64,000 bases of DNA from Mytilus edulis (Eukaryota): positions 21,638,001 to 21,702,000 of the forward strand of contig NC_092357.1 in the NCBI RefSeq assembly GCF_963676685.1, given 5' to 3'. How positions within the stretch are numbered: the stretch's first letter is position 1; the number at the start of each line of letters is the position of its first letter. The position numbers and the translations under genes are program-made. Below are positions 17,501 to 62,800 of this stretch, piece by piece. Below the pieces are notes generated by a model. That model searched no databases, was not told where the DNA came from, and saw only the letters and a list, made by a program, of their open reading frames with translations.

Positions 17501-20500
17501 TGGCATTTGTATTTATAAAATTTTACATTTTCTCATTTTGACACATCCAATAAGAACCATTAAAAAAATCTAGAGATCCAGAAATAGTTTTTACTTTTCT
17601 AAAACATAATATGCATTTATAAACATTAGATCATGCCTGAAAACTTTACCAGGTGCACAGGTTTGCATGTACCTAGTCCAAATAATTATGACGTCTTGAA
17701 AGGCTATTATAATTTTTTTCTTTGACGCCTTATGTAAGGCGTCAAAGAAAAAAATTATAATAGCCTTTCAAGACGTCATAATTATTTGGACTAGCATGTA
17801 CCCAGATAGTACATACTTTTTGTGGTGTTACGTGTAAACCATTTTTGTCAATTTCCTCTGATAAACATTGTGCTTTCTTGTATATTTGTTTGTCATCTCT
17901 TACTTCTAACTCCTTGATCATGTTGATAGTTTCTTTATAGGTAGTTTAGAGAAATGCACTGTCATGTGTTCAGAGATTTCTTGGAAATTTGGGAATGATG
18001 GGGAGTGGGGAGAGAAACGGAGATTGGTATCTCAAAACCAAGGAATTATTAGTCTACCAAGGATTTATACAAATTCCCCGGACAAATCCTTGGTCTTACA
18101 ACCACCGTATTGTAAATATATCAGCCAGGGACGGATCCAACCATATTTAAGAGGGGGTACCAAACTATTCAGTATGTTAAAAGGTAGCGTAAGGGTACCC
18201 AAATTGCACCGAGTACCCATATTGCACCTATTTAGAAAAAATAGCAACGGAAATCTTACAACATTTCCTAGAGACTAAACAATTTGTATTTTTTTGATTT
18301 GATATACTATGCACGTCTTTCAACATAGGTAAACATATTTAGATATATACGATACACAAAACGTTCACAGTATTTATCAACAGATGGACTGTTTACTGAA
18401 AAAGCAAAATGTTCGAAAACGTCACCGTACGACGTCATCAAAACGTCATCTTTTTTAAATTAGCAAAAACAATATATTATAAGTATCCATTTCGTAAAAT
18501 ATGAAGAGTAAGCATAAACTAATATCCAATTGTTCAAAATATTTGAAGAAATTAAACAAAAGCTCGGTTATTAGACTTTTGACGATGTGGATGCAATTTG
18601 GGTACTCCTCATTACAGAATCCTGGATAGTTAGTAGGTTGATTCAAACCCATTTTTTTATGGACTCAATATGGATTAAAAATCAAATTATTGTACCTATA
18701 CAATGAAGAAGGATAGGGCTACAAAATAAACACAGTGTGGACATATTTTACTTGATCATAAAAAAACGTAGGTGAAAAAACTGTCAAAATAGGTGCAATT
18801 TGGGTACCGTCACGTTACACAGTGGCATTAGGTAACCGTGGCATTATACTATACAGATTATCATCCGTCCGTCTGTTCGTTCGTTCGTCTACTGTCCAAA
18901 TTTTGTAAAAAAAACAAATGACAAAGTTTAACTATCTCCAAAAAAAACAATTATTAATAAAAAATTAAAACCCTAACCAAATACACAAAGGAAAGTGAAA
19001 ACTTCCTAGCCTTCATACTGTATAGGAGCAGTTATCCGGAAACGCTATGCACCTCTTATTATGCAAGTAATTACTCAAACAATTTCAACTATCTCCCAAA
19101 AGAGTAATTTTTTTATATCAATAAAAATCAACACTCTGACTTCAAGCAGACCTTTGAGACCAATATATGTTCACATAGCCATCAAAGAGAAAACTTTCTA
19201 TAGCACTTTTAAAAATACTAAAAAATGACAAAATTCAACAATCTCCCAAAAGAGCAAATATCAATAAAAATCAAAACCCTGACTATACATGCACATCTGC
19301 AATATATGTAGAAATAGCCAGTAAAGTGAAAATTTCCTGGCATTCAAACTGTAGGAAGAGTTATCTGGATAACTGTATTCCCATAATTGGACAGACGGAT
19401 GGACAGAAGGACGGACGGACAGGAGTAAAACAATATGCCACCAAACTTTTAGTTGCGGTGGCATACAAACTATTGTTAAAAGTGAACAAAAATATCAAAC
19501 ATGCTACATGCACAGATGAACAAGTTATCAGTATGCTGGAGTTTCTCGTTGACAGCTTATTTGTTGGATTTGGAGGTAGACGTTTCCAATAAATTGTCGG
19601 CATCCCTACAGGGAAAAAAACTGTGCGCTCTTATTTGCATATGAGTCGGAGTTCCTCCAGACACTTGTCAAAAACAAAAAGAACAAAGAAACCAGATCAT
19701 TTAATTTTACATTAAAATATGTTGATGGTGTTCTTTCCATTAACAATCCAAACTTTTCTGATTTGGTCCCATTGATATACAATGATATATCCTCAAGAAC
19801 TATGAGTTAAAAAAAAAAACATTTAGCTTCCTCCGCCTCAATTTTAGTCGAATACCCCGATTTTGTCATATCAGTACCAGAATTTATGACGAACGAGACA
19901 ATTTTAAAATTATCAATTTCCACACCTTAGTAGCAATATACCAACTTATACATTCCACAACTCATTCGGTATTCAGCTTACAGCTCATACCCAGATCTTA
20001 TGAAGCAGCTCCAGTGTCTGAGTAGAAAGTTGATGAACAATGGTTATGACAAAAAACGTCTCGTCAGCATTGTTTATCGACGGTTTAACCATGGAAAAAA
20101 ATCTAACAGACCAATCGAATTAAAGTTTTCGTAGCATGCAAGTCATATATGAGTTATTGTACCTTTGTTCATTGTTAAATTTGTCTTCTCTAACTGGTGA
20201 ATTTTTGGCACTTTTAACATAAACCCTTGTCTTTAGGATGTCATTCCCAGATGAATTGACGGCACATATTTCGTATAAACCAGCGTCCTCCTTCATACCA
20301 TACGGGATCTGAAGAGTCCACGTGTTTTTATCATTTTCAAGTGTTATCCCATCACAGATATCCAATGTTTCTCCATCTTTGAAAATAACAACTTCTGGTT
20401 CAGGAAAACCTAGATGACAAAACCTCTAAATTAAATGTACATGTACTGGATGTAAACATTATGTTTATCATTTAGAAATCAAAATTGTGAAAACATCAGT

Positions 20501-30400: not shown

Positions 30401-31814
30401 TGATTATAATATGTGTTCAAATAAGTTTCAATTGGAAAAAACATAGAAGAAACGAAAGAGTGCAACCAATAGCCCAAATACCAAAATCGATTGAAGTCAG
30501 GCAACTCCATGACCAAAAATAAAAGACACCGAAAAGACAAACAACTGTATACAAAACCCCACACACAATTTTGCCGCTCTGCTTGGGAGAGAACTCATGT
30601 GCGATAAATTAACCAAGGTATGATTTATTGAGAGTTATCCAACTTGTCAGAATCGTTCTAAATTTGCGAAAAATTAGAGATAAAAGTGTGAATAATTCAT
30701 TTTCTACGTTGTTGATTATATATATCACATACACCGACAGCCATCAATCAACGTATTAATCTTAGCCGTTAATATTTTGATATTATTAGCATAGGTTATA
30801 AAATAGACGACCGCTTTCAAGTGTATATATAACCAATTGAACAAATCATTTAGGTATCTCAATATGTTGAGTTCGAAACACTTTTCTTGATGATCGATAA
30901 GGGTGGTTTTAACGACCTTGACTAAAGCTACCCATGAGGGTATAGCACGATGAGCAAAAAATAAATAAAAAACATGGAATTAGATTAGGTAATCGTTAAA
31001 CAAAAATTAGTAAATGATTTGACAAAGGGGATGTCTTGTATACTTTAGTGCGACTGCAGCCCTACACAAATGCAAAAATTATCAATATAAATGCTGATTT
31101 GAACACTAGACAAATACAGGATCATTATCGACCCGATTCGAAACAAACATTGGTAGAAAAGGGTAAAGGTACAGTCGTGAATAGTTCAAACAAGACATAA
31201 AATTGAGAATGGAAATGGGAAATATGTCATAGAGACAACAACCTGATCAAAGAGTAGAAAACAGCCGAAGGATACAAATTGGTCTTCAACAACTGCTTAA
31301 ATATCACGATTGAATTTAAGTTGAAAGTGAATTATGAAGGGTACATGTATATAGTTTTAAATAAAATTATTATTATTAGTGATCTATGTAAATGAGGTCA
31401 AGGTCAGATAAACCCAAGCATACATGTTCACCTAACAATATAACCATACATCAAATATAGTTAATCTAATGATTATGGTATAGTACACGAGAAACGGACA
31501 TAATCATAAAAAAGAAGATTAACAAATGAACCATGAAAATGAGGTCAAGGTCGAATGAACCATGCCAGAAGCCATGTACTCCATGCCATTATTTCATACA
31601 CCAAATAAATTCTACCAATTACTTACAGTATATGAAAAACCTACATTACCATAAAAAAATTACTTTGACAAATAAACAGTGACAATCAGGTCACGACAAA
31701 TGAATCCTACCAGGCAAATATGAAATATGTCACACAAATATAAGTGAGCTATTGCAAATAGTTTGTGATCAACAGAAAAAATTAAAATCAACATTGATCA
31801 ATGAAACATATTAA

Positions 31815-35300: not shown

Positions 35301-35454
35301 CCCATTCAAATGCATTGATCGTAAAAAAAAAGGGGGGGGGTCCGGGGGTCCCCCTGGATCCTCCACTGTTCTATGGACCTCATCCAGACCCCTTTTTCTG
35401 TACGTACCAGTCTGTTGTATAGGTTACCACCGGCCAACACTACAAGAATATTAA

Positions 35455-35630
35455 TAACATGGAGAAAGAACATAGTGAATGTGTCAACGCGACAACAACC
35501 CGACCATAGAGCAGACAACAGCCAAAGACCACCAATAGGTCTTCAATGAAGCGAGAAACTCCCGTACTCGGAGGCGTCATTCAGCTGGTCCCTAAACAAA
35601 TATGTATACTAGTTCAGCGATAATGGACTG
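35455..35630 (-). repeat. Dispersed diverged copy of the Naiad pseudo-LTR sequence
   Basis: The reverse complement aligns with 60120-60275 (GTCCATTATC...CCAGCTGAA...TTGAAGACC...CTCTATGGTCGGG). Confidence 0.7.
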
Positions 35631-43150: not shown

Positions 43151-43795
43151 TAAAGAATGTTCGTTCTTTATTATAAGTTGCCCATCAGCTGTTTTTTTTC
43201 TCGAATGAACCAAGAGTTAATTGACCAACAAGGCTAAGGTTAAAAGGACTAGTGAGTAGTTTTATTTCTGAGAGTGTGTCTTGTTATGTCGGTTTTCATT
43301 GGTTTGAAGTTTTGAATACCCTCCGTGTTTGGTTAGTGATTTAAATAGCCATATTTCGTTAGACCAAGATGTTAGAAATAACGTCAAAGAAGCAAGAATT
43401 TTGATGATAGATTTGAAACTGTTCGAAGAACCACATATACAAGGTATATCATAACGAATAATTTATCTAATAAGATTTTTTAAAAACTTTTATTTTGCGT
43501 TCTTCATATTATCCATTAAATATGCGACCCCTTCCTTAACATATATACTGAAATACATTAACCTATATCCAGTGACAGCCGATGTCTTATTTCAGGATTT
43601 ATTGTTGTTCTATGTGTCCTTGTCCTAAAAAATCGTGAAATATTCGCCACTGAACGTTAAACAAAAAATAATCAAACATCAATCAATAAATAATTTCCGG
43701 ACCACAGGAGATATGCAATCCTCCTAACAAATGTAAAGGCCAAACAAAAATTGATAGTTTTATATTATAATTATATTACTTTTTGTTATGTTTTA

Positions 43796-45470
43796 ATAAA
43801 ATTGAGAATGAAAATTGGGAATATGTCAAAGAAACAACAACCCGACCAAAGATCAGATAACAGCCGAAGGCCACCCATTTGTTTTCAATGCAGCGATAAA
43901 ATTCCGCACCCGGAGGTGGTCCTCAGCTGGCCCCTAAATAAAAAATGTGTATTAGTTCAGTGAAATGGCATCACACTAAATTCCGAAACATAAAATGAAC
44001 TGAGAATAAAGAAAACCACATAAAAGACTAATAAAGGCCAGAGGCCAGACTTGGGGTCAATTACATTGGAATGTAATTAATTAAATTACACATTACATTG
44101 CAAAAATGATCAATTACATCAATTACACATTACACTGTTTTTGAAATGTAATTAATTAAATTACAATTACTTTACTAAAGTAATTAATTAAATTACACAT
44201 TACATTTCGTCATGGTATTTTTTAACAATATTATACATGTATAAATAATGCATGTGTAAAATATTCATGTAAGCATAGTTTAAGCGTTGCATTTGATAAT
44301 CATTAGCTATTTTAATGTTTTGTCATTTAGTCTGCCTCTCTCTGGTCTGAACACTTTGACATCAATTCTAAATAGTCTTTAGACAGGAGCTAATGTGGCA
44401 GATATTGCTTGATCAGAACATGGAAGTTCTATGATCAGAAGATCACCATATTGAAAGGAGGGGGAATTGGTTCCTATTAACTTGCCAATACATCAAGGGG
44501 TATTTTGACATCTCAGAAATTAAGTCATTTAAATTAAACATAATATAAATAAAGATATTATACATAAATCATAATTTTTTTTTTTTAATTTACATTAAAA
44601 ATATCAAAAAGTGTGCTTGTCACAATATTGAAAATAATTTTTAGTACAAATAATGTATGTATAATGTCTTAATATTAGCAATATTTTGCTAATTAGATAA
44701 AAAATACATGCAACAGTGGCATTGCCCCTGGACATTTTAATCTGATTAATTGCTGTTTGTTTTTACAGCTGTTAATTTTTATTTCTATAATCCTTTTGTG
44801 TATACTTATTTGACAAAATGATTGTGTGCAGTGATTTTAAAATCTAAATGAACTATCTAAGAAAGATTTTTCACAGTGACACTTTTTTTTGTTTTTTGTT
44901 TAACAAGGTGATTAATTACTTATAAATATATTTAGTTTAAAGATCATTCTTAAAAACAGAACACTAATATATGATTCTCACATTTTTTTTAATTTACAAT
45001 TAAATAATTATTATCAAAAAAAACCATCAGCAGGTGAAAAAAATATTAATATACATTGTAACTTCAGTATAAATTATGGACTTCATATAATGAAAGAGTA
45101 TGTGATATCAATATTTGAAAAACAAGTATTATTTTACAATTTATATTATTAAACACAAATCCTTATCTTTAACACCATAAAAGTATATGTAATTGAAATG
45201 TAATTCATAAGTAATTGAGCATTACATGCTTTTTTCAATGTAATTAATTAAATTACCATTACATGTAATTAAAAAAATGCTCAATTACACATTACATTCA
45301 ATTACATGGAAAATTGTAATGCATTACACTTAATTACCATTACATTTTCAATTACCCCATCCCTGCCAGAGGCTCCTGACGAGGGACATGCGCAAACATT
45401 GGCGGGGTTCAACATGTTTAGTGACATCTCAATACTCCCCCTATGCCTCTAGCCTATGTAGAATAAACAA
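43796..45470 (-). mobile_element. 5'-truncated relative of the Naiad 3' end/pLTR, split by a hAT MITE
   Basis: 43796-44045 and 45366-45470 are reverse-complement homologues of about 59950-60290. Confidence 0.7.
44046..45365. mobile_element. hAT-like MITE with ATTAC-rich subterminal repeats
   Basis: 8-bp TSD CCAGAGGC at 44038-44045 and 45366-45373; CAG...CTG ends. Confidence 0.8.
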
Positions 45471-46344
45471 ATACACAGTATACACACAGTGAAACTCTGT
45501 TTAAAAGAAGTCTGAGTTAATGTTTGTCTTCCCTGTGAAAAAAGTCGCAGAAAGTTAGACATAGGTGTTACAAATAATTTTGATAGGAACTAGTTGTAAT
45601 AACTTTGAAGTTATATTACTATTAGTTCATTTCTAGTTTGACATTAATTTTGAGACCCTGTAGCCATAGGTTATTGTCCAGAGACTTTGAATTTATTAGT
45701 AATGTTGCTGTCCATCAGATTGTTTTTCGAATTATCTGCCGACAGGCGAGACATGCATATCTCTATCAACAGTTAATTTGTCTCGTCTTGACGCAGTCTA
45801 AAAGCGAGTCAAAGGTATAATGCTTTCGAAAGCTTCATGTATGCCAATTATTAGACATAAAAAAGAGATGTGATACGATTGCTATTGAGACTATCTACAA
45901 TAGACCAAATGACACAGAAATTAACCACTATAGGTAGCCGTACGGCCTTCAACAACGAGTTAAGCCCATACCGAATAGTCAACCGAAATGACGTATGTAA
46001 AACATTCTTATAGCATTCCGCGAAGTACTTATCTAGATGTTTGAGAAGCACTACCCTTTCTCTACCAAATATAGAAGAGACGGGATCAGTCATCTGTGTT
46101 GGCGAAGATGTACCCTTACTCAATAACATGCATATGAGACAAGCTTTGGTTCTCAATCAGATGCATATGAGACAAGCTTGGGTTCTGTACCAGAATGAGA
46201 AGCTGTATCCTTACTGTATCCGTACTCGATTACATGTATGAGAAATCGTGTTGTAACTCAATCGTGTAAATGAGAAATAAAACGTATCAGATGTATATCA
46301 GCTTGTATCTTGAAAGTATTCAAAATAGATGCTAGCTATTTCAA

Positions 46345-48489: not shown

Positions 48490-49250
48490 TAAGCATAGGA
48501 AAAATCACTCTGATTCAAACATTCTTTTCCCATAAAACTTACATTATCAAGATGCTGGATTTCTTGATTGACAACTTATTGCTACGTTAGTTAACTGTTG
48601 AACGCATCTAACCTATCCAACTAACGGATACACCAGATGCATTTAAGTCTGCCTTTTATCTTAACTTGCATCTAGAAATTGACGACAAGGGTCGGTTGGC
48701 AACTGAGTTGCACGATATAATTGATTCAGCTTCATAATTGTAAACTTTCAATTTCTATGTAGCAGCGTATTTATCTCCCAGTTGATACGGTATTGCAGAG
48801 CTTGTAATTTCTATTGTATTTTCCTTGATAAAGGATTGCTGGTCACAAGGAAGCTATTAAACCAAGAGTTCCAAGTGGAGAAGTTGAAATCCTTCATTTG
48901 TAACACGAGTTGGTTGATCTTTATGGTAGTAAGTTTTAACTACAACCTCGCCCCTTTCCCCGAACATGTCCTATCGAGTAAGACTTATTACTGGTGCTGT
49001 ACTAGTATGAGCAACACGATTGATGCCACATGTGGAACAGGATCTGCTTAACCTTCTGGAGCACCTGTGATCACATCAAGTTTTGTTATAGTTCGTGTAG
49101 TACTTCGTCTTTAGTGTTCTATGTTGTGTTTTGTGAACTATCGTTGGCTGTTTGTCTTTTCTTTCTTAGCCATGGCGTTGTCAGTTTATTTTCGACCTAT
49201 GAGTTTAAATGTCCTTTTGGGTTTTTTTTTCGCCTTTTTCCTACGATGAG
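48490..49250 (+). pseudogene. Decayed Penelope-like RT 3' fragment with its 3' tail
   Basis: IIKMLDFLIDNL, SAFYLNLHLEIDDKGRL and YFSQLIRYCRAC...RKLLNQEF remnants. Confidence 0.65.
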
Positions 49251-49679
49251 CAAGCGCTAATTATGATATTTCTTTTTTGCGTTTAATCTATGTCGATTTT
49301 TTTGAAAAATCAGAGGCAATGATTTTGATTAAAACAACTAAAGCTTCAAGATCCGTGTGTAATTTGCAACCTACAACTACTATACGCTGATTGTCGGAAA
49401 TATAAAATGTACTTGTGCTCACTACGAAACTGCGAGTTTCGTTTCTCATCATGTTTCATATGCAAAAATTTCTTTAGTTTAGTAATTGTAATATATATCA
49501 GTTATATACGATATTTAATTCGATATTTATTTCTTATAAGCTTTCATGATTAGTTTGAATATACTTTTTATACATGTTACTATTTTTGTGTATGCAATTC
49601 ATTTCAAATTCAAAAGCCAGCATAGAAGCAACTTGAAAAATTGGAATGAGAATACTGCAAATAGAGTCAAGTCATACTC

Positions 49680-50250
49680 AAATTTTGACTTACATCTAGA
49701 AATAGACATTTAGGGTCGGTTGAAAACAAAGCTTTAAAGCAAAAGAGATGACTTCAGCTTTCAATTTCTATGCAGCATGTAGCAACATTCCAGCAACGCC
49801 TGCATACAGATTATATATCTCACAGATGATACAATATTCTAGGGAATGTATTTCCAACATGATTTTCTTGATAGACGGTTGCAGCTGCTTATAAGGAAGC
49901 TATTAGACCAAGAGTTCCAAATGGTGATGTTGAAACCATCCCCTCATAAGTGTAACGGACGCCATCGTGAATTGGTTGACCGTTATTGAATATCCGTTTA
50001 ACAGACGATAATGGATATGTTAGTAATCTTGTAACTACAATACTGTCTATATTTCCCGAATGTGACCTCCCGAATTAGAATGATTATCGGATTTGTATTA
50101 ACATGAGTAACACAACTTGTGCTACATGTGAGGCGGGATCTGCCTACCCTTCCAGGTTGATGTTCGTGTTGCTCAGTCCACAGTGTTCTATGCTGTGTTT
50201 TATTTACTATTATTTGTCGGTTGGTTTTGTTTTCCTTTTTTACCATAAGT
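49680..50250 (+). pseudogene. Second decayed Penelope-like RT 3' fragment with its tail
   Basis: DLHLEIDI.GRLKTKL..KRDDFSF, SNIPATPAY..YISQMIQYSR and KLLDQEF remnants. Confidence 0.65.
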
Positions 50251-50887: not shown

Positions 50888-53800
50888 CTATGAAATAGAA
50901 ATACAAATGTCAATATTAATGTACAATACAGTGTTGACTGATGTACCCCTATTGTGAAATCATTACCTTTTAGGCATTTTTGTCAATACAATTAAATATT
51001 ATGCGCCTTACCTACAAGTGAAAGGTTTAGCTAGCTATAAAACCAGGTTAAATCCACAAATTTCTAATAAAGAACATGTCTGTACCAAAACAGGAATGGG
51101 ACAGTTGTTTTTCAATCGTTTTATGTGTTTGAGGTTTTGATTTTGCCATTTGAAAACAAATTTCCCTGTTTAAAAAGTTAGGGCCAATTTGTCCGGATTT
51201 TTTTTCACAGAAAGGCCAATTTCAAAAAGTACCAACAGAATAAAATTTACTATAAAAACAAAAAATAAAAAAAAATGCTTTTGATCAATATCTCGATTTA
51301 CATATATTATGATACGTGTGATAAATATTTAATCTTACCCTCAAAAAGGATGAAAGTCCAATATGCGGAATTTGTTTTTAGGTGGGAAATAAAGAGAATC
51401 CCCAAAGAAGGACATTTCACACCAAAAAAAAAAGTTATGTTTTTCGTAACTGTGGCAATTTATACTATATTTTCCGTCAGATATGAAATTGGTTGAGTGT
51501 GTCCTTATTATATAAAAAACAACTTTTTAATGGAAAAATTGTAACATCTCTAAATTGTGCCGATATAGCTCCTTATTAAGAATATTATGGTCAAGTATCG
51601 CGATGGCTCAATCAGTAGAGCATAGAACTACAAATGACATATTGTTTTCAAGCTAGGGTTCGAATCTCGCTCAGACTTTTTGCTTTTATTTGTTTAATGT
51701 TTCTATCATATTTTTTCGGATGTTTGCTTAATTCATAGAGTCATTTAGGTTCATTTTGACTATATAGTATAAATCATTTTATTAAAAAAAATACTGTATC
51801 GCTTATTGTGTGCATTCCTATGACTGCCCATACTCTTGACTTATTTTCTATTCATGTTTCCATTGATAACATATATGCAAAGAACAACTGCCGTCAAACT
51901 GAAGAAGGTGGCTATAAATAACCAATAACACGAGAATTGATTCTAAAGCAATGAATCCCAAATGTTGCATGTATAATTAATATACACATAACATAAAATA
52001 AGGTCATTGTATACAAGTTTCAAAACAACACAAACAATTTTTCGAAACTTGATGCTTATATTAGGTAAGATGGAGATGTTCGAGTATTCCTATCGTGTGT
52101 ACAATGTACATAGTGCAGTCAACAGCAATCAATTTTGTCGCCAATTCACTAACTGTGTAGATACTAGTACTGAAATTCTTACCACCGTCCCTACACCGGT
52201 AACTAAGTCATCAGAAAATAAGACAACACCACAGGACAAATCAATTACACTACAAATCGTGATTGTATACGTAAAACATCAAGAAGCTGTTGCATCTGTA
52301 TCGCAACGAAGGGCCGATTTGTTAAAATGCCAGAAAAGGCCATATAACATGTGTTAGTAACACAAGGTGTTCTATGGCCAGCTGATGTAAGCTGTTCTCC
52401 GGTTACTATATATATAATCTTATCTTATAGACGATAAAACATTAAAAGACCAGGACAAATACAGATATACATATATTAAGAATGTGAAAAACAACATCCC
52501 ATTTGAATTTGTTCAATATTATTTGATTCTTGACAAGTTACGTTGTATGGTACCTTATGCGCATAAAGGGTGTTAAAAATTAGATACAATCAATATAAAA
52601 CAATCAATAGTCTTGGCCTTGATTTTTTGTAAGAATACCTGTTCAAGGTAGGAAAATAGATGATGTGACGTATTTCAATGTACTATTATTAGCATATATC
52701 GGGCTATTTAAAACATTTACCTATCTTATCGAATGAAATGAATTGAGGGGAAATTGGCCATACCTCTTTTCCTTTGAGTTGGGTATTTTTGTTATTTTAC
52801 AATAATGTCTATGTAAAAAGTATCCGGTTGTATTTCATTGTCTCCTTTTGAATTGCATCTGCACATCATCATTATTTGAGAATAATTCATTCTATGAAAA
52901 GCTAGTACAATTTATTAATTAAGTAATACATAAGATTAAGTTTATTGTAACCCAGCATGTCTCTACAGACACGGACAAAGGAAACACGTTTGGATATTTT
53001 AACACCGTACGATGGTGTTAATGGAGCACCAGCGTCCATAAAACAATCACAATAAGACATTTTTTTTCCCGTTTTGTTGTAAATTTGTGTGTTACATTCG
53101 TCGTGTAAAACTAAAAAATCGACGTTTAGAAGCGGACAGTTATTGCTTTTAAGTACAGTTGGAAAACTTCAGGAGTATAATAAGATTTATAAACTAGAAT
53201 TGCCATTGCAAGCAATAGCGGATGTCACCCTGGTCCACCAATTGCCACTAAACAGCAGCCATGGTAACGGCAGCCATTTTGGAAATTCCAAAGTTGTATG
53301 CCGCATCTAGATTTACAAGTTTACCTTTCTGCAACGTTTTCAAAATTTTGCTATTTTTGAACAGTTTCCATGGCAACATTTGAAAATTCCAAAGTCATAC
53401 TGCTGCTTCATATTGTGCTCCCAATAATATTATACCATTATATAACATCTAACGGCCGTAGAATTAATCTAAATCTAATGTTCTAGAATGTTCCATCACA
53501 TTTTCACATTTTTGCTGTTTCCATGGAAATGGAAGAAATATTTTAAATTCCAAAGTCAGGTGCACAACTACAGATGGTGATCAACATTATGTTATAGTTT
53601 CATCAATATTGGTCCATTCAGTTCCGAGAACTAAGCTGGACAAAAAAGTGTGGAATAAGAATATGAAAAAAAGAATTGTACAATAACAATATGTCATCCG
53701 ACCATGTCAGGGTGACATAATTATTTGATGAAATAATATATATCATGAAGAAAGTGTGGTTGTTTTATCCGTTTAAACATTGAACTTGTTGAATTTAGGC

Positions 53801-56800
53801 GTGTCTTTATAAGTGTAACCGTAAGCTGAGATTCAAAACAGTACAGTAACAAATTTGCTTTCAAAGTGGCGGAATTGGCGCCTAAAGAAATACTAACAAC
53901 CTGTCGATTAACTAATTTTGAGAAATTTACATTAATGTTGGCATCGAAAAAAATATAAGAAGCATTATTGTTTTTTTGGTCTGCAATATATTGTTCGAAT
54001 GTTTATACTTACCAAAGTCTATTGGGTTGCCTCTGACCACCTAAATAAATGAAAATAAAGCAAAAACATGTCAGAAAAACAAAAGGGTGTCTGGAATTTT
54101 ACTGGATTAATAGTCATCTTAAAGGAGTAAGCTCTGTAAGGGTCATATTTGGCCCCCATTAAAAGTTCAATGCTACAAGATAAGAAAATGTTCAAATTTG
54201 ACTAAAATATTCAATGGACATTTACCCATTCTCATTGTTTCTCGATAAAAATCAAAAAGAGTTTGTTACTCTTGTTACTATTTGTGACGTCATGAATAAA
54301 AGGCAAGAACGTAAATTTACAACAAATTTACTTATTTCCTGTTTACTCAAAGTATTATTCATTGTAATTTTGGTCAATAAATCCCAATTGGAAATTTAAT
54401 CTAACAAATGGGGCAATTTTAGGGTCTTGTCGAACCTACTCATTCTTTTTGCATAGGAAAATTTGTGTACACGACTAACAAAGCAAAATTTCTTTAAAAA
54501 ATGTCTTTAAAAAGACAAAAATGATAAGATACTAGTAGTTAAAAAAAAGGTCTTCAAATTGAAGAATATATGAATGACTAGAAATATACCTTACCTTGCA
54601 AAGAGTGTGAATGCTCCGTATTTTACCAATTTCGACTGCTTTTCTGATGTCATCAAATGTTATATGGGTACCCACGACGGTTTTGTGGAGTGCCTCAAAT
54701 TTCAATCTTTCTGGTTCTTCTCCAAATGTAACATACAGATCATCCCATGGTTGATAGTCCATCCCAAGATGCATTGCCAACTCTTTTGTTTCGGTTATGC
54801 TGTACTGCATTGACAATCGATGTAGATGAATATCTGAGGGAATCTGTTCTAAAAACTCAGTATCGGTTACTGAAATGTTCATAGAAAAAAATATTATCAA
54901 TATTTAAAAGGAATATTAAAAATATAAAGAAGTAGATTTGAAACAATTCTGAATGAGACAACTATTCACAAGAAACCAAAACTTACACATAAATTAACTA
55001 CTATAGGTCACCGTAAGGCCTTTAATAATGAGCCAAAAAAGCACATTTGATAGGATCTTATAATGTCTAATTATAAAATGTTAGGCTTAAAAAAAATCTA
55101 TACGAAATAAGGAATATAACAGTTGTATTCCAGTTGAGCACGTTAATTTTTCATGTTTTATGGACTATAAATAAGTAAATATAAGATATGTTGTATACGA
55201 TCTGAATACCGACAATGATAATGGGTCTGATAAAAATGATGGGTTTGCACGAAAAAATCGATTACATAACTATGATAACATTTTGTCAATTTCTTAGTTG
55301 TTCAACAGTAGAAAAGGTAAAACCATATTCCTCAATGCAATCATACACCGATTTATAAAGTCTTCAAACCTTTTCATCATAAACAATGTAGTTTTTTACT
55401 GATCGCTTTATACACATTCAAAACAACTGCACCGTATTTCAAATTAGGACTATCGACATTAATTGATAAAAAAAATGATACACCTAAAGAATATAAATTA
55501 ATAGAAGTAATGCATTATAAACTAGTGGTATTCCTGCGTCATGTCAAAGCATTTTATCACATTATTACAGATAACAAGAATATAAAAAAATCATGCAGAA
55601 CATCTTTTTCTCTCTCCTTGGAATGAGGATCAAATAATATAGACTCTTCCTTCATTAGATAACGTTGTTTTGTCCTCATTTAAGATTAAACTGTTTAAAA
55701 ACAAAAATGTGTAAACAATTTTCACTAAATAGCAATCATGCAATAGATAAATCATACAGCAAATACGTCACCTGGGCATGATTTTCCACATTGAAATTCG
55801 TCCTAAAATATACATTAACACCGAATAAGTTAATAAGGAAATATGAGTAAGAATAAACAAAAGGGTAATCAGATATAAGGACACAGAGCATTTGGACAAG
55901 AAATAAACAAAACTCACTTTACAGTAGGCTTATGATTAAGTTTATTCGAAAGTAGAAAAAATAAATTCCGGATTCCGGAGCAATGTACGGTTTGCAAGAT
56001 TTTTGGGAAACATGTATTTCAGGTAAATATTCTGGGAATTCTCGCTACATTGAAGACCCATTGGTTGCCTTACGGAGTTTAGTATGACGTCCATTATCAC
56101 TGTACTATTATGCATATTTTAGGGGCCAGCTGAAGGACACCTACGGGTGCGGGAATTCTCGCTACATTGAAGACCCATTGGTTGCCTTCGGCTGTTGTTT
56201 GCTCTATGGTCGGGTGGTTGTCGCTTTGACATAGTCACCATTTCCTTTCTCAATTTTATTTTTTACAGAGTTTGTCTTTAGTGCCGTGTGGAGACAGTAG
56301 AGTGCCTCCCCGTGCTTAAGGTTTATGCTCTTATATTATACTAGATTATGGAGTGTGTGTCCGAGCGAGAACTTCTCTATGTTCATTACTTTAGGAATAT
56401 CTATCAAAAAGTAGTATTTTAATATTCAGCCCCATTCATCTATTTAGTCAGACGTCAGTCGCTACCTTGATATACCCTTTCTTTTTTAAATTTGTCGGGT
56501 AACTTATGACAATAAGCATTTGACGTCTTGAGCCGAACAGTTTTATCATTTTTACACAATTTAATCTACTGTGTGATGGTTCATATTCTGGACGCCAGTC
56601 TTTGCTCCTTTGTAATAAATCTACATACCAAAAAACAAATATGAAGCTTAGAAATGGAAAAATATTAAATACTAAACTCGTTCAAAGGGTATCTACACGT
56701 CTCAATCTTCAGAATCGCTTATCTAAAAATACTACTATAGCTAACGTTTTTAACAATAAAAATCGTGGTTACCCTTCTATCGATAAGTGTCATGCCAAAA

Positions 56801-59800
56801 AATGACTTACGTGTCCCCGTCTTTCCACCAACAATACAGTAAGGTCCACATTTAATGGTCGCACATTTTCTCTAAATTTTGAAACTGATATTACTTGAAA
56901 AACAAACAGTATTATTTATTTACTCACATGAAACAAACCGGGATGCGGTATTCAGTACGTAGGTGAAACTGGGCGATATTTATCTAAACGCACGCAAGAA
57001 CACCTGTATCGTTTTAAAAGACCCAATAAATTCAAAAGTATCATTTATCAACATCTTAAGAAGCACAGTCATCCTATTAAATATTTAACAGTTCAACCTT
57101 TAGAAGTAGTAAATAAGCAGCCTGGTGAATCTCATTCCAAGTTTGTACGATCACGAAAAATAAATGAATTAAATTGGATTAAAAAATTACAGACAGTCTA
57201 CCCTCTCGGTCTTAATGATAATATCATGGGAATTGGCAATATATCAAGAACCGATTCTGTTAACATTTTGGATATAGTTTCTAAAACTGTTCGTAAAAAT
57301 CGTTCTCATGGACGCAGAAAAAATCGCAATCAAAGAAAATTTCGGACTAACCATACAAATATTTCGGACCTAATTTCCATTTCAAAAAACAACGGCAGAC
57401 ATTATCTGTTAACCAAGCTTTGTTCTTTACCTATAAATAAATTAAATAAAATTTTAGAGGATTGCAACACAATTTCATATTACAGTCCTAAGTATGAAAT
57501 TGTCCAAATTATAATGGCATATTGTTATTCTAAACTGTTTCCAAAAATTGATCGACCTGAAGATCATAAAAAACCTTTTATTAAAATAAAGTATGTCAAT
57601 AAAGGTTTTGATTTTGTAAATATTGCCGGCATTTTTAACGACCATTCTGTTAAAGACCAAATTCCTGGATATTTTGATAATACTGAACTCCCTCTCATTT
57701 GTTATATTTACAAGAAATCTACCCGAAAATATGTGTTTAATTATAGCCAATTGTGTAAAGATGTAAATATCACTGAAAATACACCTATGTCGTGTAATTG
57801 CAGTAATTCAGAATACACCTATGGACCAATTTCCCATGTTATAACAGGAGACCTTAACATCGTTCGCGACCGAGAGTTAAAATCATTCCTCAGTAAAGGA
57901 CCTAAATATCGTCCCCCGTCAACTATTAACTGGAATGAGTGTCGTAATATCATCAACGACTCACTCCGCGCCTACTGTTTGAAATGGGTAAAACGGGAAA
58001 AAGCTGACAAAAAATCTTTGGACTCTTTTATTAATTCAGTAATGAAGATAGTTGATATTCGAATACAACATTTTAAAGAACATTTTACCCTCAACAAAAA
58101 CTATAAAAACCCTATTTCGCGTATCAAAAATAAACTAACAGAACTAGCCAAGGAATTTGTTTTTGTCCCGGCTGATAAAGCTGCTAATAATATCATTATT
58201 GTTTGACGTAAATTTTATATAGAGGTTCTGCAAAAGGAAATCACGAATTCACCAACATTCCAACTGACTTCATTTTCAGAAAACGACATCTGTAACAAAC
58301 ATAAACTTTTAGCTACTTCTTTACAAGCAGAACCAAACACAATGAAAGTCCCAACTATGTACTGGCTTCCGAAGCTGCACAAAAAACCTTACAAATATAG
58401 ATTTATTTCATCTTCCAGCCATTGTTCAACTACTAAATTGTCTGTTTTACTTACTAGTACACTTGGTACAATAAAAAACCTGATAATAAATTGTTCAAAT
58501 AAGGCCTTTGAAAATAGTGGAATTAATTACTTTTGGAGTGTCAAAAACTCGTTGGAAGTACTTGATAAATTGCATGCATATATTGGTGATTTTGAATCTG
58601 TTCAAAGTTTTGATTTTTCTACCCTATATACCACTTTGCCTCATATTCTTATTAAGAAAAAATTCACATCCCTAATTAACTGGGCATTTAAAAAGTCGGA
58701 ATGCGAGTACATATGTTCAAACTCTTTTAGATCATTTTTTAGTAGCAATAAACAAAAGAACTATGTCAATTGGACATGCTTTGATACTATTTATGCACTT
58801 GAATTTTTACTTGATAACATTTTTGTTCGCTTTGGAGATTCCGTATATCGTCAAGTTATTGGAATTCCAATGGGGACTAACTGTGCACCACTTATTGCGG
58901 ACCTGTTTTTGTATTGTTATGAGTTACAATTTATGACTAAAATTAGCAAAGACCCATCAAAACAACATTTGATACAAAAATTTAACAATACTTTTAGATA
59001 TTTGGATGATATATTGGCTCTAAATAATGACGACTTCAGTATGTATACTAAAGAAATTTATCCTGTAGAACTTACTTTAAATAAAGCTAATGATAACAAT
59101 GACCACTGCCCTTTCCTCGATCTTGATATCTATATCATAAACGGGAAGCTTAATACAAAAATTTATGATAAAAGAGATGATTTTTCATTTCCTATTGTTA
59201 ATTATCCATTTTTAGATGGTGACGTTCCCTTGTCACCATCTTATGGTGTTTATATATCTCAACTTGTACGATTCGCTCGTGTATGTAACAATGTATTAGA
59301 TTTTAGCGAGAGAAATTTATGTATTACTGAAAAATTATTACACCAGGGTTTTCGATATCACAAACTGGTCAAAACATTTACTAAATTTTATCACCGGTAT
59401 AAGGAAATAATTCGTAAATATAACTCAACATGCAGACATCTTATACGTTCAGGTATTTCACATCCAAAATTTTATGGAAATATTCTTTATAAAGCACAAA
59501 AATGTCAGTATTCTCCTCAGAAACTAACAAAACCTTTAAATAGACTTATTAAAAGGGGATATAGTTACGATACTGTTGTCAGGTCATTAAAGATTGCATA
59601 TTTTGGCTTTAACATTGATTCACTGATAGGGTCTTTGCATCGGAACTAAACACATTTACTTCTAAAAAAACAGTTGTTGGCATGACACGGGTTATGTTCT
59701 TCTCATATATTTTATGATAGTATGATACTAAACCCCTAACGGGAGGGATTGTACCTGATATTCATATGATGAAGACATAATCTTTCAATCAGTTTAATTG

Positions 59801-62800
59801 AGGTCTGGAGCTGGCATGTCAGTTAACTGCTAGTAGTCTGTTGTTATTTATGTATTATTGTCATTTTATTTATTTTCTTTTGTTACATCTTTTGACATCA
59901 GACTCGGACTTCTCTTGAACTGAATTTTAATGTGCGTATTGTTATTCTTTTACTTTTCTACATTGGCTAGAGGTATAGGGGGAGGGTTGAGATCTCATAA
60001 ACATGTTTAACCCCGCCGCAATTTTGCGCCTGCCCCAAGTCAGGAGCCTCTGGCCTTTGTTAGTCTTGTATGATTTTAAATTTTAGTTTCTTGTGTATAA
60101 TTCGGAGTTTAGTATGACGTCCATTATCACTGTACTATTATGCATATTTTAGGGGCCAGCTGAAGGACACCTACGGGTGCGGGAATTCTCGCTACATTGA
60201 AGACCCATTGGTTGCCTTCGGCTGTTGATTGCTCTATGGTCGGGTGGTTGTCGCTTTGACATATTCACCATTTCCTTTCTCAATTTTATTTTCATTATAT
60301 CTCGAAACTAATAATCCTTGTCGAAAGGTTATTGGCCTGTATATAAAAAGTACTGTCAGTATCCCATATAGAAGAGGTAGGAAGACTTTATGCACAAATT
60401 TAAGATACTTCTTTTTCTTATATTGATATTTACCAACAGCCTAATGTCTTATTTCAATCTAAAAGATTGTAAATTTTTTCTTTTTACATTTTGGAAACAG
60501 GACTCACTTATATCTTCTAGTCATATAAATTTATGTGGTACGATGTGTTGTTATTTAAAAAATCATGATTGACCAAACATATAAAACAGAAAAGTTGACC
60601 ATGCATATATTATATGTTTAATGACATAATAGGAATGAGCTACGCTATTAAGATAACATTATCAAAATATTGAACCCTTTTTTTTTATTTAGTAGTCATC
60701 ACTATGTTAAAATCTAAACATAATTTACATACACAACTTTGAATTTGTTTACTTATTATGTTTAACTTATACAACTTTTAAAGAGTATTAGGCAAAAGCA
60801 TTGGAAATTTTGACTCCGGAAAGTTCTTCGATTTCCTATCGTATTTAGCCTTTTAACGTTTTTGATTTGAGTGTCACTAATGAGGCGGTTGCAGACGAAA
60901 CGTGGTGTACACAATTATAATCCAGGTATCGGTGATGTTGTATTCTTTTGCCGAATATACGAGACACGTTCAAAGTTGAAGATAGGTAAATAAAAATACA
61001 ACAGTTCTTTTGCATTTGCCTAGGACTTTAGTTTGAAGTTAATTCTATGTTAAAATTTCTTAATTTCTTAATTTTGAAAATGAATATGTGCCAAGTATTT
61101 AAGATTATTATTCAAAACACATCTATCATGGTATAACCTTAGACTAAATGGTTTAGTGAAAAAATAAATTTTTACAGATATCCATCAAAAAAGTTGAAGA
61201 ACATCAGAAGTTTTTAACGTATTTATAGAAGTTATGTTTTAATTGTATTTACCTTTTGTATGGCCCACGACGACATCATGTCTTTGGTGTGCTCGATTCC
61301 GTGTTTTGGACATATCCATGAACCGTCTTGTTGTTGAAGTGTTGATATTGGCAATAGACAAGGATCGTCAGATGAACTGCAACACAAACTTAGATTGAAA
61401 AAGCTTTTGCTGGCAACAAAATCTGTACTGCTGGTTTTGACGTACAGCTGACTTATTTTCTCAAGAGCAACAGTTAAACATTCACGAATACTAGATGCAA
61501 GATCTCTCATAATGAGTGTTCGATTCCGCAAGTGAACAAGACGGACAACTATGATTTCATCATCACAGTTTACACACATATCTAGAGATTGGTCAATATT
61601 AAAAACAGCTGACCTATGAAACAATAATTCATCATCCTTCTGTCCGTATGTTTTAACTGCAAAGATACTCAAGCAATAACTGATGAATCGAAAGGATAAA
61701 GCCGGTGGTATCATTGAGGAAGAGTAGCTAAAAGCTATAGCGATATTACTCTGAGTGAATGTCGGCGACATAAGATAACCTGTTGTGTCATTGGTTCGTA
61801 CCATGCTGGCAACGTAGTAGAATTCAGCTGGTATACGTGTTTGTGACTTATCATATCGTTTGGGTTCAACTAGTATATCAAGATGTGTCATGACTCCTAA
61901 TAAATATTCCTTATGATCTTTAAACTTTATGTACTTTTTCTTCTTCCAGATTTTTTCTATGGAAGTCTTCTCTATTATGCCTTTCTTACTCATCAAATCC
62001 CAAGATTTCAGTCTCTTTGTGTCACCTTTACAAAAGCTTCTATCAGTAACGATCGATTTAAAGGCATCAATCAGATGTGTCGGCGACAGAATGATGTGTT
62101 GATCCAAATTAACCTCATCAAAGTATAAGATCCGTCCAACAGAGTGCTGAAATTTGAGAAATACTTTCAATTCTTCTTCAGTTAATGGTCGAACAGGTTG
62201 AAGGGAATTAATTCTCTCCATTTGCTCCATTGTTATTGACAGATTGTTTCTACTCAGAAGTGACTCGAATTCCCATTCAAGAGGAATGAAGCATTTGGGA
62301 AGATGCTGTCCCCATGTCGGTTGCATCATTGCCTGCTCAGTTATAACCTTTTTGATTTTCGCCATTTCTGGATCACGTTTGTTCTTTGTATTTACAAATA
62401 TTTGCTCTTTAATTACTAGATGCGACAGTAATGGACTTCCAGAAAACATCTTCTCTATTTCACGAAATAATTTGCGACGTCTTGCTTCAACTTCCATCTG
62501 TAAACAAACCTGTTGTCTTGAGTTTTGTGAATATATAGAATACCAAACTGTTATACATGTAGCTGAATAATACATACTAGTAATGAAATGATATCTACTT
62601 GCGTATTTCATTAATAGTTCTATAAATGTAATATGTAGTTTATAATAAACACACTTTAATATATACATTTTCTTTTTCTGCATTTTAGTGCAGACTAGAA
62701 CAATGTTACTGCAACTGTTTTATACGAAAATTTCTTTTTCAGTAAATTTAAAACAATATAGAAGCCATTTGTTTATATCAATCTGTCGTTGATGTTGCTA

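Follow-up and report, generated by a model that had tools for sequence, protein, structure and literature searches.

Only one class of mobile elements is known to encode selenoproteins, and it belongs to Naiad, a type of Penelope-like element (PLE). In two clam and two spider species, Naiads carry three or four in-frame UGA codons together with a grade-A selenocysteine insertion sequence (SECIS) (Craig et al. 2021, PMC8557442). In the clam elements the UGAs, taken to encode selenocysteine (Sec), replace the cysteine (Cys) before the GIY motif, the first Cys of the CCHH motif and a Cys eight amino acids past the DKA motif, with a UGA at position RT6(D) of the reverse transcriptase (RT) in one family; in the spider elements they lie in the CX2-5CxxC motif (PMC8557442). 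The published SECIS elements are of type I and lie 1–21 bp after the stop codon, the spider elements were inferred to have gained Sec independently, and chelicerate Naiads are without the insertion in the fingers domain (IFD) (PMC8557442). A search of the literature available for this work found no paper on Sec-coding transposons later than Craig et al. 2021. The current study concerns a further Naiad, located in a stretch of 64,000 nucleotides from Mytilus edulis (contig NC_092357.1, positions 21,638,001 to 21,702,000, forward strand), referred to here as the window and numbered from its first letter. A sequence-only reading of the window had proposed an intact, probably recently active selenoprotein Naiad and had cited the spider and clam precedents, which the published account confirms. 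The analysis described below supports that proposal through Cys columns in homologues, alternation of TGA with Cys codons, the SECIS, substitution rates and genomic copies. With a probability of roughly 0.88, the element is an intact, young, high-copy Naiad whose four UGAs are read as Sec by means of a SECIS in its own 3' untranslated region (UTR).

Translation of 56641–59649 gave a single frame of 1003 codons, i.e. 1002 sense codons including four UGAs, plus a TAA at 59647, with no frameshift. The only in-frame stops were at codons 55, 86, 97 and 522, and each was TGA (nt 56803, 56896, 56929 and 58204, designated U1 to U4). The sequence-only reading had interpreted three apparently broken open reading frames (ORFs) as one 3009-nt frame interrupted only by TGA and closed by TAA; translation reproduced the frame, all four positions and the closing codon, and the residues it gave around the TGAs match exactly. 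In the list of ORFs the frame opens at TTG 56602, and therefore an in-frame stop lies further upstream. The features that carry the argument are as follows.

56641–59649, + strand: single ORF with N-terminal GIY-YIG endonuclease, linker and RT (from translation and the alignment of homologues)
56788–56814, + strand: CX4UxxC zinc-finger-like motif (C50, U55, C58), with U1 as TGA at 56803–56805
56896–56898, + strand: U2, TGA at the Cys preceding the GIY motif (residue 86)
56929–56931, + strand: U3, TGA at residue 97, the first Cys of CCHH within the GIY-YIG core
58174–58206, + strand: DKA (residues 512–514) followed eight residues on by U4, TGA at 58204–58206 (residue 522)
59702–59772, + strand: SECIS of type-II form, comprising helix I, AUGA/UGAU core, helix II, unpaired AAA and a 3-bp mini-stem (from Rfam, folding, covariation and a purpose-built model, 73.6 bits)

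Judged by their published description, the clam elements Naiad_Mmer (Mercenaria mercenaria) and Naiad_Scon (Sinonovacula constricta) have the same architecture as the window element. Their UGAs correspond to U2, U3 and U4, and they likewise have a 3' UTR SECIS and a true stop of UAA or UAG. Unlike the clam elements, the window family has an extra UGA at the second Cys of CX4CxxC, which has been reported as Sec only in spiders, and unlike Naiad_Scon it has no UGA at RT6(D). Its SECIS is also of a different form and lies further downstream than the published ones, 55 nt after the stop. The spider elements Naiad_Sdum and Naiad_Smim are multi-Sec as well, and the Sec of Naiad_Sdum at the second Cys of CX2-5CxxC is equivalent to U1; the first Cys of CX4CxxC, however, is not Sec in the window element. 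Naiads of the Cys type (Penelope-2_CGi of oysters, and the homologues P0009, P0012 and P0026) share the domain order and the diagnostic motifs, with 28–37% identity over residues 98–521, but have Cys at all nine conserved columns described below and neither an in-frame TGA nor a SECIS. Selenoprotein Naiads were thus already known (PMC8557442), and the window element adds a member in a new host lineage; the U1 Sec site is new for molluscs, and Sec at the CxC motif, observed in relatives of the element, is not listed in the text of PMC8557442.

A phmmer search with residues 98–521 against 1.84 billion representative proteins returned 2741 matches, and the window element was aligned with 49 matches of at least 800 aa. 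The TGAs had been noted earlier as resembling Cys positions. In the alignment Cys occupied every non-gap row of the four columns (37/37, 42/42, 44/44 and 49/49 at residues 55, 86, 97 and 522, respectively). Across the entire protein just nine columns reach 90% Cys or more (50, 55, 58, 86, 97, 102, 385, 387 and 522), and four of these hold the TGAs. Since four stops, all of them TGA, sit on four of nine such columns, chance is excluded; the combinatorial odds that four random codons among 1002 would land on them are about 3e-9. The closest phmmer matches were themselves ORF fragments: seven separate 50%-identity clusters stop seven residues after DKA, exactly at U4, and the ends of three further clusters immediately precede the first Cys of CxC.

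Scanning metagenome contigs yielded 76 related loci (numbered with the prefix L below), ranging from 100% to about 26% protein identity. At the Cys columns TGA alternated strictly with TGT or TGC across these loci, the exceptions being one TAA and one TGG, each in a visibly decayed locus; the non-Cys, TAA or TAG codons in sister copies that the sequence-only reading had named as speaking against it were thus confined to those two. In the 43 loci with alignments longer than 400 aa, the in-frame stops comprised 87 TGA, one TAA and one TAG, and 81 of the 87 TGAs fell on five Cys columns, namely residues 55 (7 loci), 86 (14), 97 (17), 385 (15) and 522 (28). The Sec content predicted per locus ranged from one (L045) to five (L036, L041 and L046), and all-Cys loci had no in-frame TGA. 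TGA at the same columns was also seen in lineages with as little as about 40% protein identity, and all four TGAs of the window element were kept in both the 93%-identical subfamily L034 and the 62%-identical family L036. In the RT tree every locus with TGA at U4 fell into one clade (support 98/95) with the all-Cys Naiads outside, and two nested members of this clade had reverted to TGT or TGC at U4 (L053 and L059).

One of these, L059 (1910–1981), is the nearest relative outside subfamilies L032–L034 (78% protein identity). Its contig is 5'-truncated, and it has TGT at U4 and a retained SECIS, suggesting that one site reverted from Sec to Cys and that others still encode Sec. It was also found that some TGAs lie off the five Cys columns in frames that are otherwise open: in L040 and L062 (query residue 922), in L038 (residue 819) and in L041 (in an insertion near residue 568). 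That of L038 is close to RT6(D), the site of the UGA reported for Naiad_Scon. These TGAs may represent either additional Sec sites or mutations of recent origin.

The only significant RNA-family match in 56000–60400 was to Rfam SECIS_1, at 59704–59768 on the + strand (30.9 bits, E 0.003). The sequence-only reading had placed a SECIS-shaped hairpin about 40 nt after the stop; the hairpin itself stood up to the Rfam and covariation analyses, and its distance was corrected, the SECIS_1 match beginning 55 nt and the extended helix 46 nt past the TAA. Thermodynamic folding of the SECIS alone was not significant (z -1.5), and covariation was therefore used as the test. In ten aligned hairpins AUGA, AAA and GA were invariant, and compensatory changes were present in 15 of the 18 predicted pairs. 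SECIS_1 matched 9 of the 15 Sec-type loci with at least about 150 nt of 3' flank, as against 0 of 11 all-Cys loci (Fisher p 0.002). The ten hairpins were used to train a covariance model (R1), which gave 25 matches in 318 kb, all on the coding strand and just 3' of the stop; 11 were in loci outside the training set, none was in an all-Cys locus, and the SECIS of the window element was the only match in the 64 kb. The hairpin lies 51–55 nt after the TAA in the subclade of the window element and abuts a TAG stop in the subclade of about 45% identity. Weak Rfam matches to twister-P1 in the 3' regions of L039 (4555–4618) and L065 (2415–2464), with 23–24 bits against a cut-off of 67 and E of 1–2, are probably due to chance.

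The host genome has five genes for tRNA-Sec (RF01852), with scores of 77–80 bits where the cut-off is 47, an unusually large number for an animal. Four identical-scoring genes lie within about 560 kb of a single chromosome (G000:C7:74815896-75374462), and the other coordinate is G000:C1:49149863-49149948. In addition, a tandem array with an 895-bp period (G000:C10:14401393-14442259, and contig C945) contains tRNA-Sec-like matches of 45.9 bits, under the same cut-off, which presumably represent another long-arm tRNA or a tRNA-derived repeat.

Raw RNA-seq reads were spread along the entire unit. Their depth was low except at 59822–60115, where it was about 10-fold higher than over the ORF. The reads show that the element is present in RNA but do not separate autonomous from embedded transcripts. 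The depth peak and the reads that run on past the element fit co-transcription of thousands of 5'-truncated copies within host transcripts. Among the 23 best-supported ORF differences in the RNA reads, which came from material with a second species label, 20 were synonymous, 22 matched L034 and none was in a TGA codon; 213 further differences lie beyond these 23.

Several observations weigh against the decoding of the four UGAs as Sec in an autonomous element. Insertion of Sec at these codons is deduced from comparative patterns. The SECIS_1 score is under the curated cut-off of 35, and the Sec-type loci L039 and L073 have no SECIS match with either SECIS_1 or R1. A single SECIS would have to serve all four UGAs, which span 1.4 kb and begin 2.9 kb upstream of it, and the yield of full-length protein may therefore be low. 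The RNA data are weak for autonomous transcription, as the libraries look unstranded, with read orientations about equal and a heavy 3' bias, and 36–39% of the RNA reads continue into unrelated sequence, as expected of copies inside other transcripts.

The comparative nature of the evidence and the SECIS_1 score under the cut-off would suit an alternative in which the UGAs are read through as Cys, Trp or Arg by near-cognate tRNAs, or are recoded by some other SECIS-independent process, with the hairpin serving another role. In selenium deficiency the Sec machinery itself can insert Cys at UGA, which also counts for this alternative. It is nevertheless considered improbable, because the hairpin has all the hallmarks of a SECIS (the AUGA/GA quartet, the unpaired AAA, two covarying helices and its location in the 3' UTR), its presence follows that of TGA across lineages, and tRNA-Sec genes are present in the host.

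Evidence on whether the frame downstream of the TGAs is functional came from comparison with L034, which is 7% diverged. Over 3009 nt there were 212 substitutions and no indels, and the Nei-Gojobori estimates of synonymous (dS) and nonsynonymous (dN) divergence were 0.28 and 0.028, respectively (dN/dS 0.10). By segment, dN/dS was 0.10 for codons 98–521 and 0.11 for codons 523–1002, which lie past the last TGA, indicating that the whole frame was under purifying selection while the element propagated.

A search of the host genome gave 4504 candidate matches, of which the best 40 were full length, and 30 of the best copies were retrieved. The matches were on 14 large contigs of the 1.37-Gb assembly, compared with the 19 chromosomes that M. 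mercenaria and S. constricta each possess. The retrieved copies were 99.65–99.87% identical to the window copy, in agreement with the recent activity proposed earlier; all 30 kept the four TGAs and the TAA, so that the TGAs are not private to the window copy, a point on which the sequence-only reading had asked for a check, and at least 25 had no further stop. Variants shared among these young copies (8 synonymous, 6 nonsynonymous) are sparse for a test of selection. Pattern counts in the genome indicated about 440 copies that reach U4 and 2,363 that carry the SECIS core, with none in reversed controls. The window element is probably among the most recently active transposons in its genome.

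These data bear on a second alternative, in which the lineage is dead or non-autonomous, the TGAs being nonsense mutations in a master copy that was mobilised in trans by Cys-type Naiads. Trans mobilisation is common among retroelement families, other PLE remnants are present in the genome, and the 30 sampled copies are so young that fixation of TGA among them alone proves little. A dead lineage does not, however, account for a dN/dS of 0.10 downstream of every TGA at a dS of 0.28, for columns that hold TGA even in lineages of about 40% protein identity and elsewhere encode only Cys, for 87 TGAs against two other stops, or for a covarying SECIS restricted to TGA lineages, and this alternative is regarded as very improbable. 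Equally slight is the chance that the pieces between the TGAs are made as separate polypeptides by termination and re-initiation: gene predictors do call the pieces as ORFs, and the protein clusters end exactly at U4, but two of the inter-stop pieces have just 30 and 10 codons, the GIY-YIG core is split across U2 and U3, homologues continue through these positions with Cys, and re-initiation leaves the alternation of TGA with TGT or TGC unexplained.

Two further families or copies in the same genome deserve mention. L031 (3474–4925, G000:C1:55851473-55852924) is an older, internally deleted copy, 93% identical to the window element, which has TGT at U4 and no close siblings in the genome; its TGT is either the ancestral Cys codon or a later mutation. 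A second young Sec-Naiad family (e.g. G000:C10:949330-950160), represented by L036 (479–3481), has about 59–62% protein identity to the window element and matches L035/L036 at 99% identity. Its in-frame TGAs number five, with CxC contributing the additional one at its first Cys, and the expected run of 286 open codons from the U3 stop to the CxC stop is seen at 10 or more genomic places at 99–100% identity.

On the interpretation as a selenoprotein Naiad, the element mRNA would carry one 1002-codon ORF whose four UGAs would be decoded as Sec by the single 3' UTR SECIS together with the host tRNA-Sec, SBP2 and eEFSec. Sec would replace an invariant Cys at four places: the second of CX4CxxC, the one before GIY, the first of CCHH and the one eight residues past DKA. 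The full-length selenoprotein would nick DNA and then reverse-transcribe its own RNA at the target, in the target-primed manner of other PLEs, leaving 5'-truncated copies and partial-tandem copies with pseudo-long terminal repeats (pseudo-LTRs). We infer that the four Sec residues have a metal-ligand or redox role in the finger-like motifs, and transposition may depend on selenium status, because the enzyme could not be completed without Sec and mobility would hinge on how much selenium the host has and how well it decodes Sec. Selenoprotein P is one of the few other eukaryotic proteins in which several Sec residues are obtained from one mRNA, and in bivalves its Sec content is described as particularly high (Baclaocos et al. 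2019, cited by PMC8557442). It is unrelated to the protein of the window element, and most often has two SECIS elements and a C-terminal tail rich in Sec, whereas here one SECIS would serve Sec residues scattered over the finger-like motifs of an enzyme.

If this interpretation is correct, the known class of selenoprotein-coding mobile elements is extended, with thousands of dispersed SECIS copies documented. Dispersed SECIS elements have been proposed as raw material from which new selenoproteins could arise (Craig et al. 2021, PMC8557442), and thousands of 5'-truncated copies, 2,363 from the window family alone, would spread ready-made SECIS elements that could seed host selenoprotein genes. 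The recovered Sec-type loci form one clade with repeated exchange of Sec and Cys at metal-finger positions, a natural experiment on the replacement of Cys by Sec. Standard annotation pipelines would label the element and hundreds of its sister copies as pseudogenes in three pieces. A wider generalisation is tentative and on balance unlikely to hold in full: that Sec Naiads form an old, species-rich clade of marine invertebrates, in which one SECIS serves from one to five or more Cys-switchable Sec sites, transposition is tied to selenium supply, and SECIS copies are able to seed new selenoproteins.

The assignment to Naiad rests on the overall anatomy of the element, of which the remaining parts are listed here.

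56263–60292, + strand: full-length Naiad unit of 4030 bp (start-to-start spacing 4030; homology to 29 other copies begins at about 56263–56267 and ends at 60288–60292)
56073–56262, + strand: upstream pseudo-LTR, formed by the final 190 bp of a tandem copy truncated at its 5' end, 188/190 identical to 60103–60292
56034–56075, + strand: 42-bp tail that repeats unit positions 60181–60221 (97.6% match) and lies immediately 5' of the pseudo-LTR
56263–56640, + strand: 5' UTR, the first ATG of the frame being at 56641
56896–57219, + strand: GIY-YIG endonuclease core (IIY ... YVGET ... QEH ... NELNW ... PLGLND), residues 86–193 (from motifs and alignment; homologues match PF01541 there)
57292–57345, + strand: KR-rich block, putative nuclear localisation signal, residues 218–235, RKNRSHGRRKNRNQRKFR (R, H, G and N residues invariant in the alignment)
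57790–57801, + strand: CxC motif (C385 and C387; SCNC at 384–387), encoded here by TGT/TGC, the first Cys being TGA in the 15 related loci counted above
58372–59262, + strand: RT core with motifs KLHKKPYKYRFI, FDFSTLY, GIPMGTNCAP, YLDD, FLDLDI and GVYISQ (homologues match RVT_1 there, below threshold)
59650–60292, + strand: 3' UTR, the last 190 bp (60103–60292) being the downstream pseudo-LTR

The terminal repeats had been reported in the sequence-only reading to differ at 2 of 190 positions, and the direct repeats at 56073–56262 and 60103–60292 were indeed 99% identical. Its extent of 56641–59780 did contain the ORF and the SECIS, but the element is larger, the unit being extended on both sides and preceded by the pseudo-LTR and tail. 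Comparison with the 29 other copies showed that the upstream partial tandem copy differs in length among genomic copies and that some copies are 5'-truncated. A unit of 4030 bp, a 190-bp pseudo-LTR, 5' truncation and a 42-bp tail agree with the Naiad structure, which has a body of 3.4–4.4 kb, pseudo-LTRs, 5' truncation and terminal tails of 30–40 bp (Craig et al. 2021, PMC8557442). Naiads have a preference for (TA)n microsatellites as targets; no obvious (TA)n run was seen in the flanks of the window copy (before 56034 and after 60292), the one insertion looked at.

The motif order is the diagnostic Naiad layout of Craig et al. 2021 (PMC8557442). The CX2-5CxxC and CCHH motifs are present as C50-x4-U55-x2-C58 and as U97-x4-C102 followed by His, with the columns conserved in 35–44 homologues; two of these positions are TGA here, one in each motif. 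GIY-YIG is N-terminal and RT C-terminal, and full-length homologues match PF01541 and RVT_1 accordingly. The KR-rich block, CxC, the GxKF/Y motif (KGPKYR at residues 419–424) and DKA in place of DKG complete the set. In the RT, YLDD occupies residues 787–790, and about 84 aa separate FDFSTLY (657) from GIPMG (741). Domains were assigned through full-length homologues, as Pfam gave no significant domain on the three ORF pieces of the window, which is explained by the splitting of the GIY-YIG core between pieces and the divergence of PLE RTs. A sequence search of the PDB with the RT piece returned nothing meaningful.

Canonical PLEs of the Penelope, Poseidon and Neptune types resemble the window element in their partial-tandem pseudo-LTRs, 5' truncation, pairing of GIY-YIG with RT and CCHH motif. 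They differ in having a C-terminal endonuclease, hammerhead ribozymes in the pseudo-LTR and DKG instead of DKA. An Rfam scan of 56000–60400 at E values up to 10 matched no hammerhead ribozyme family, in keeping with Naiads, whose pseudo-LTRs are without a canonical hammerhead.

Decayed fragments of other PLE-type RTs were present elsewhere in the window, at 19488–19989 (+), 48725–49867 (+) and 52932–53951 (-), with 34–52% protein identity to the RT of the element. Four stretches on the - strand (43795–44056, 45365–45523, 35453–35628 and 31197–31289) were 78–83% identical to the last 100–400 bp of the unit, and by their similarity appear to be 5'-truncated copies of related families that share its 3' tail.

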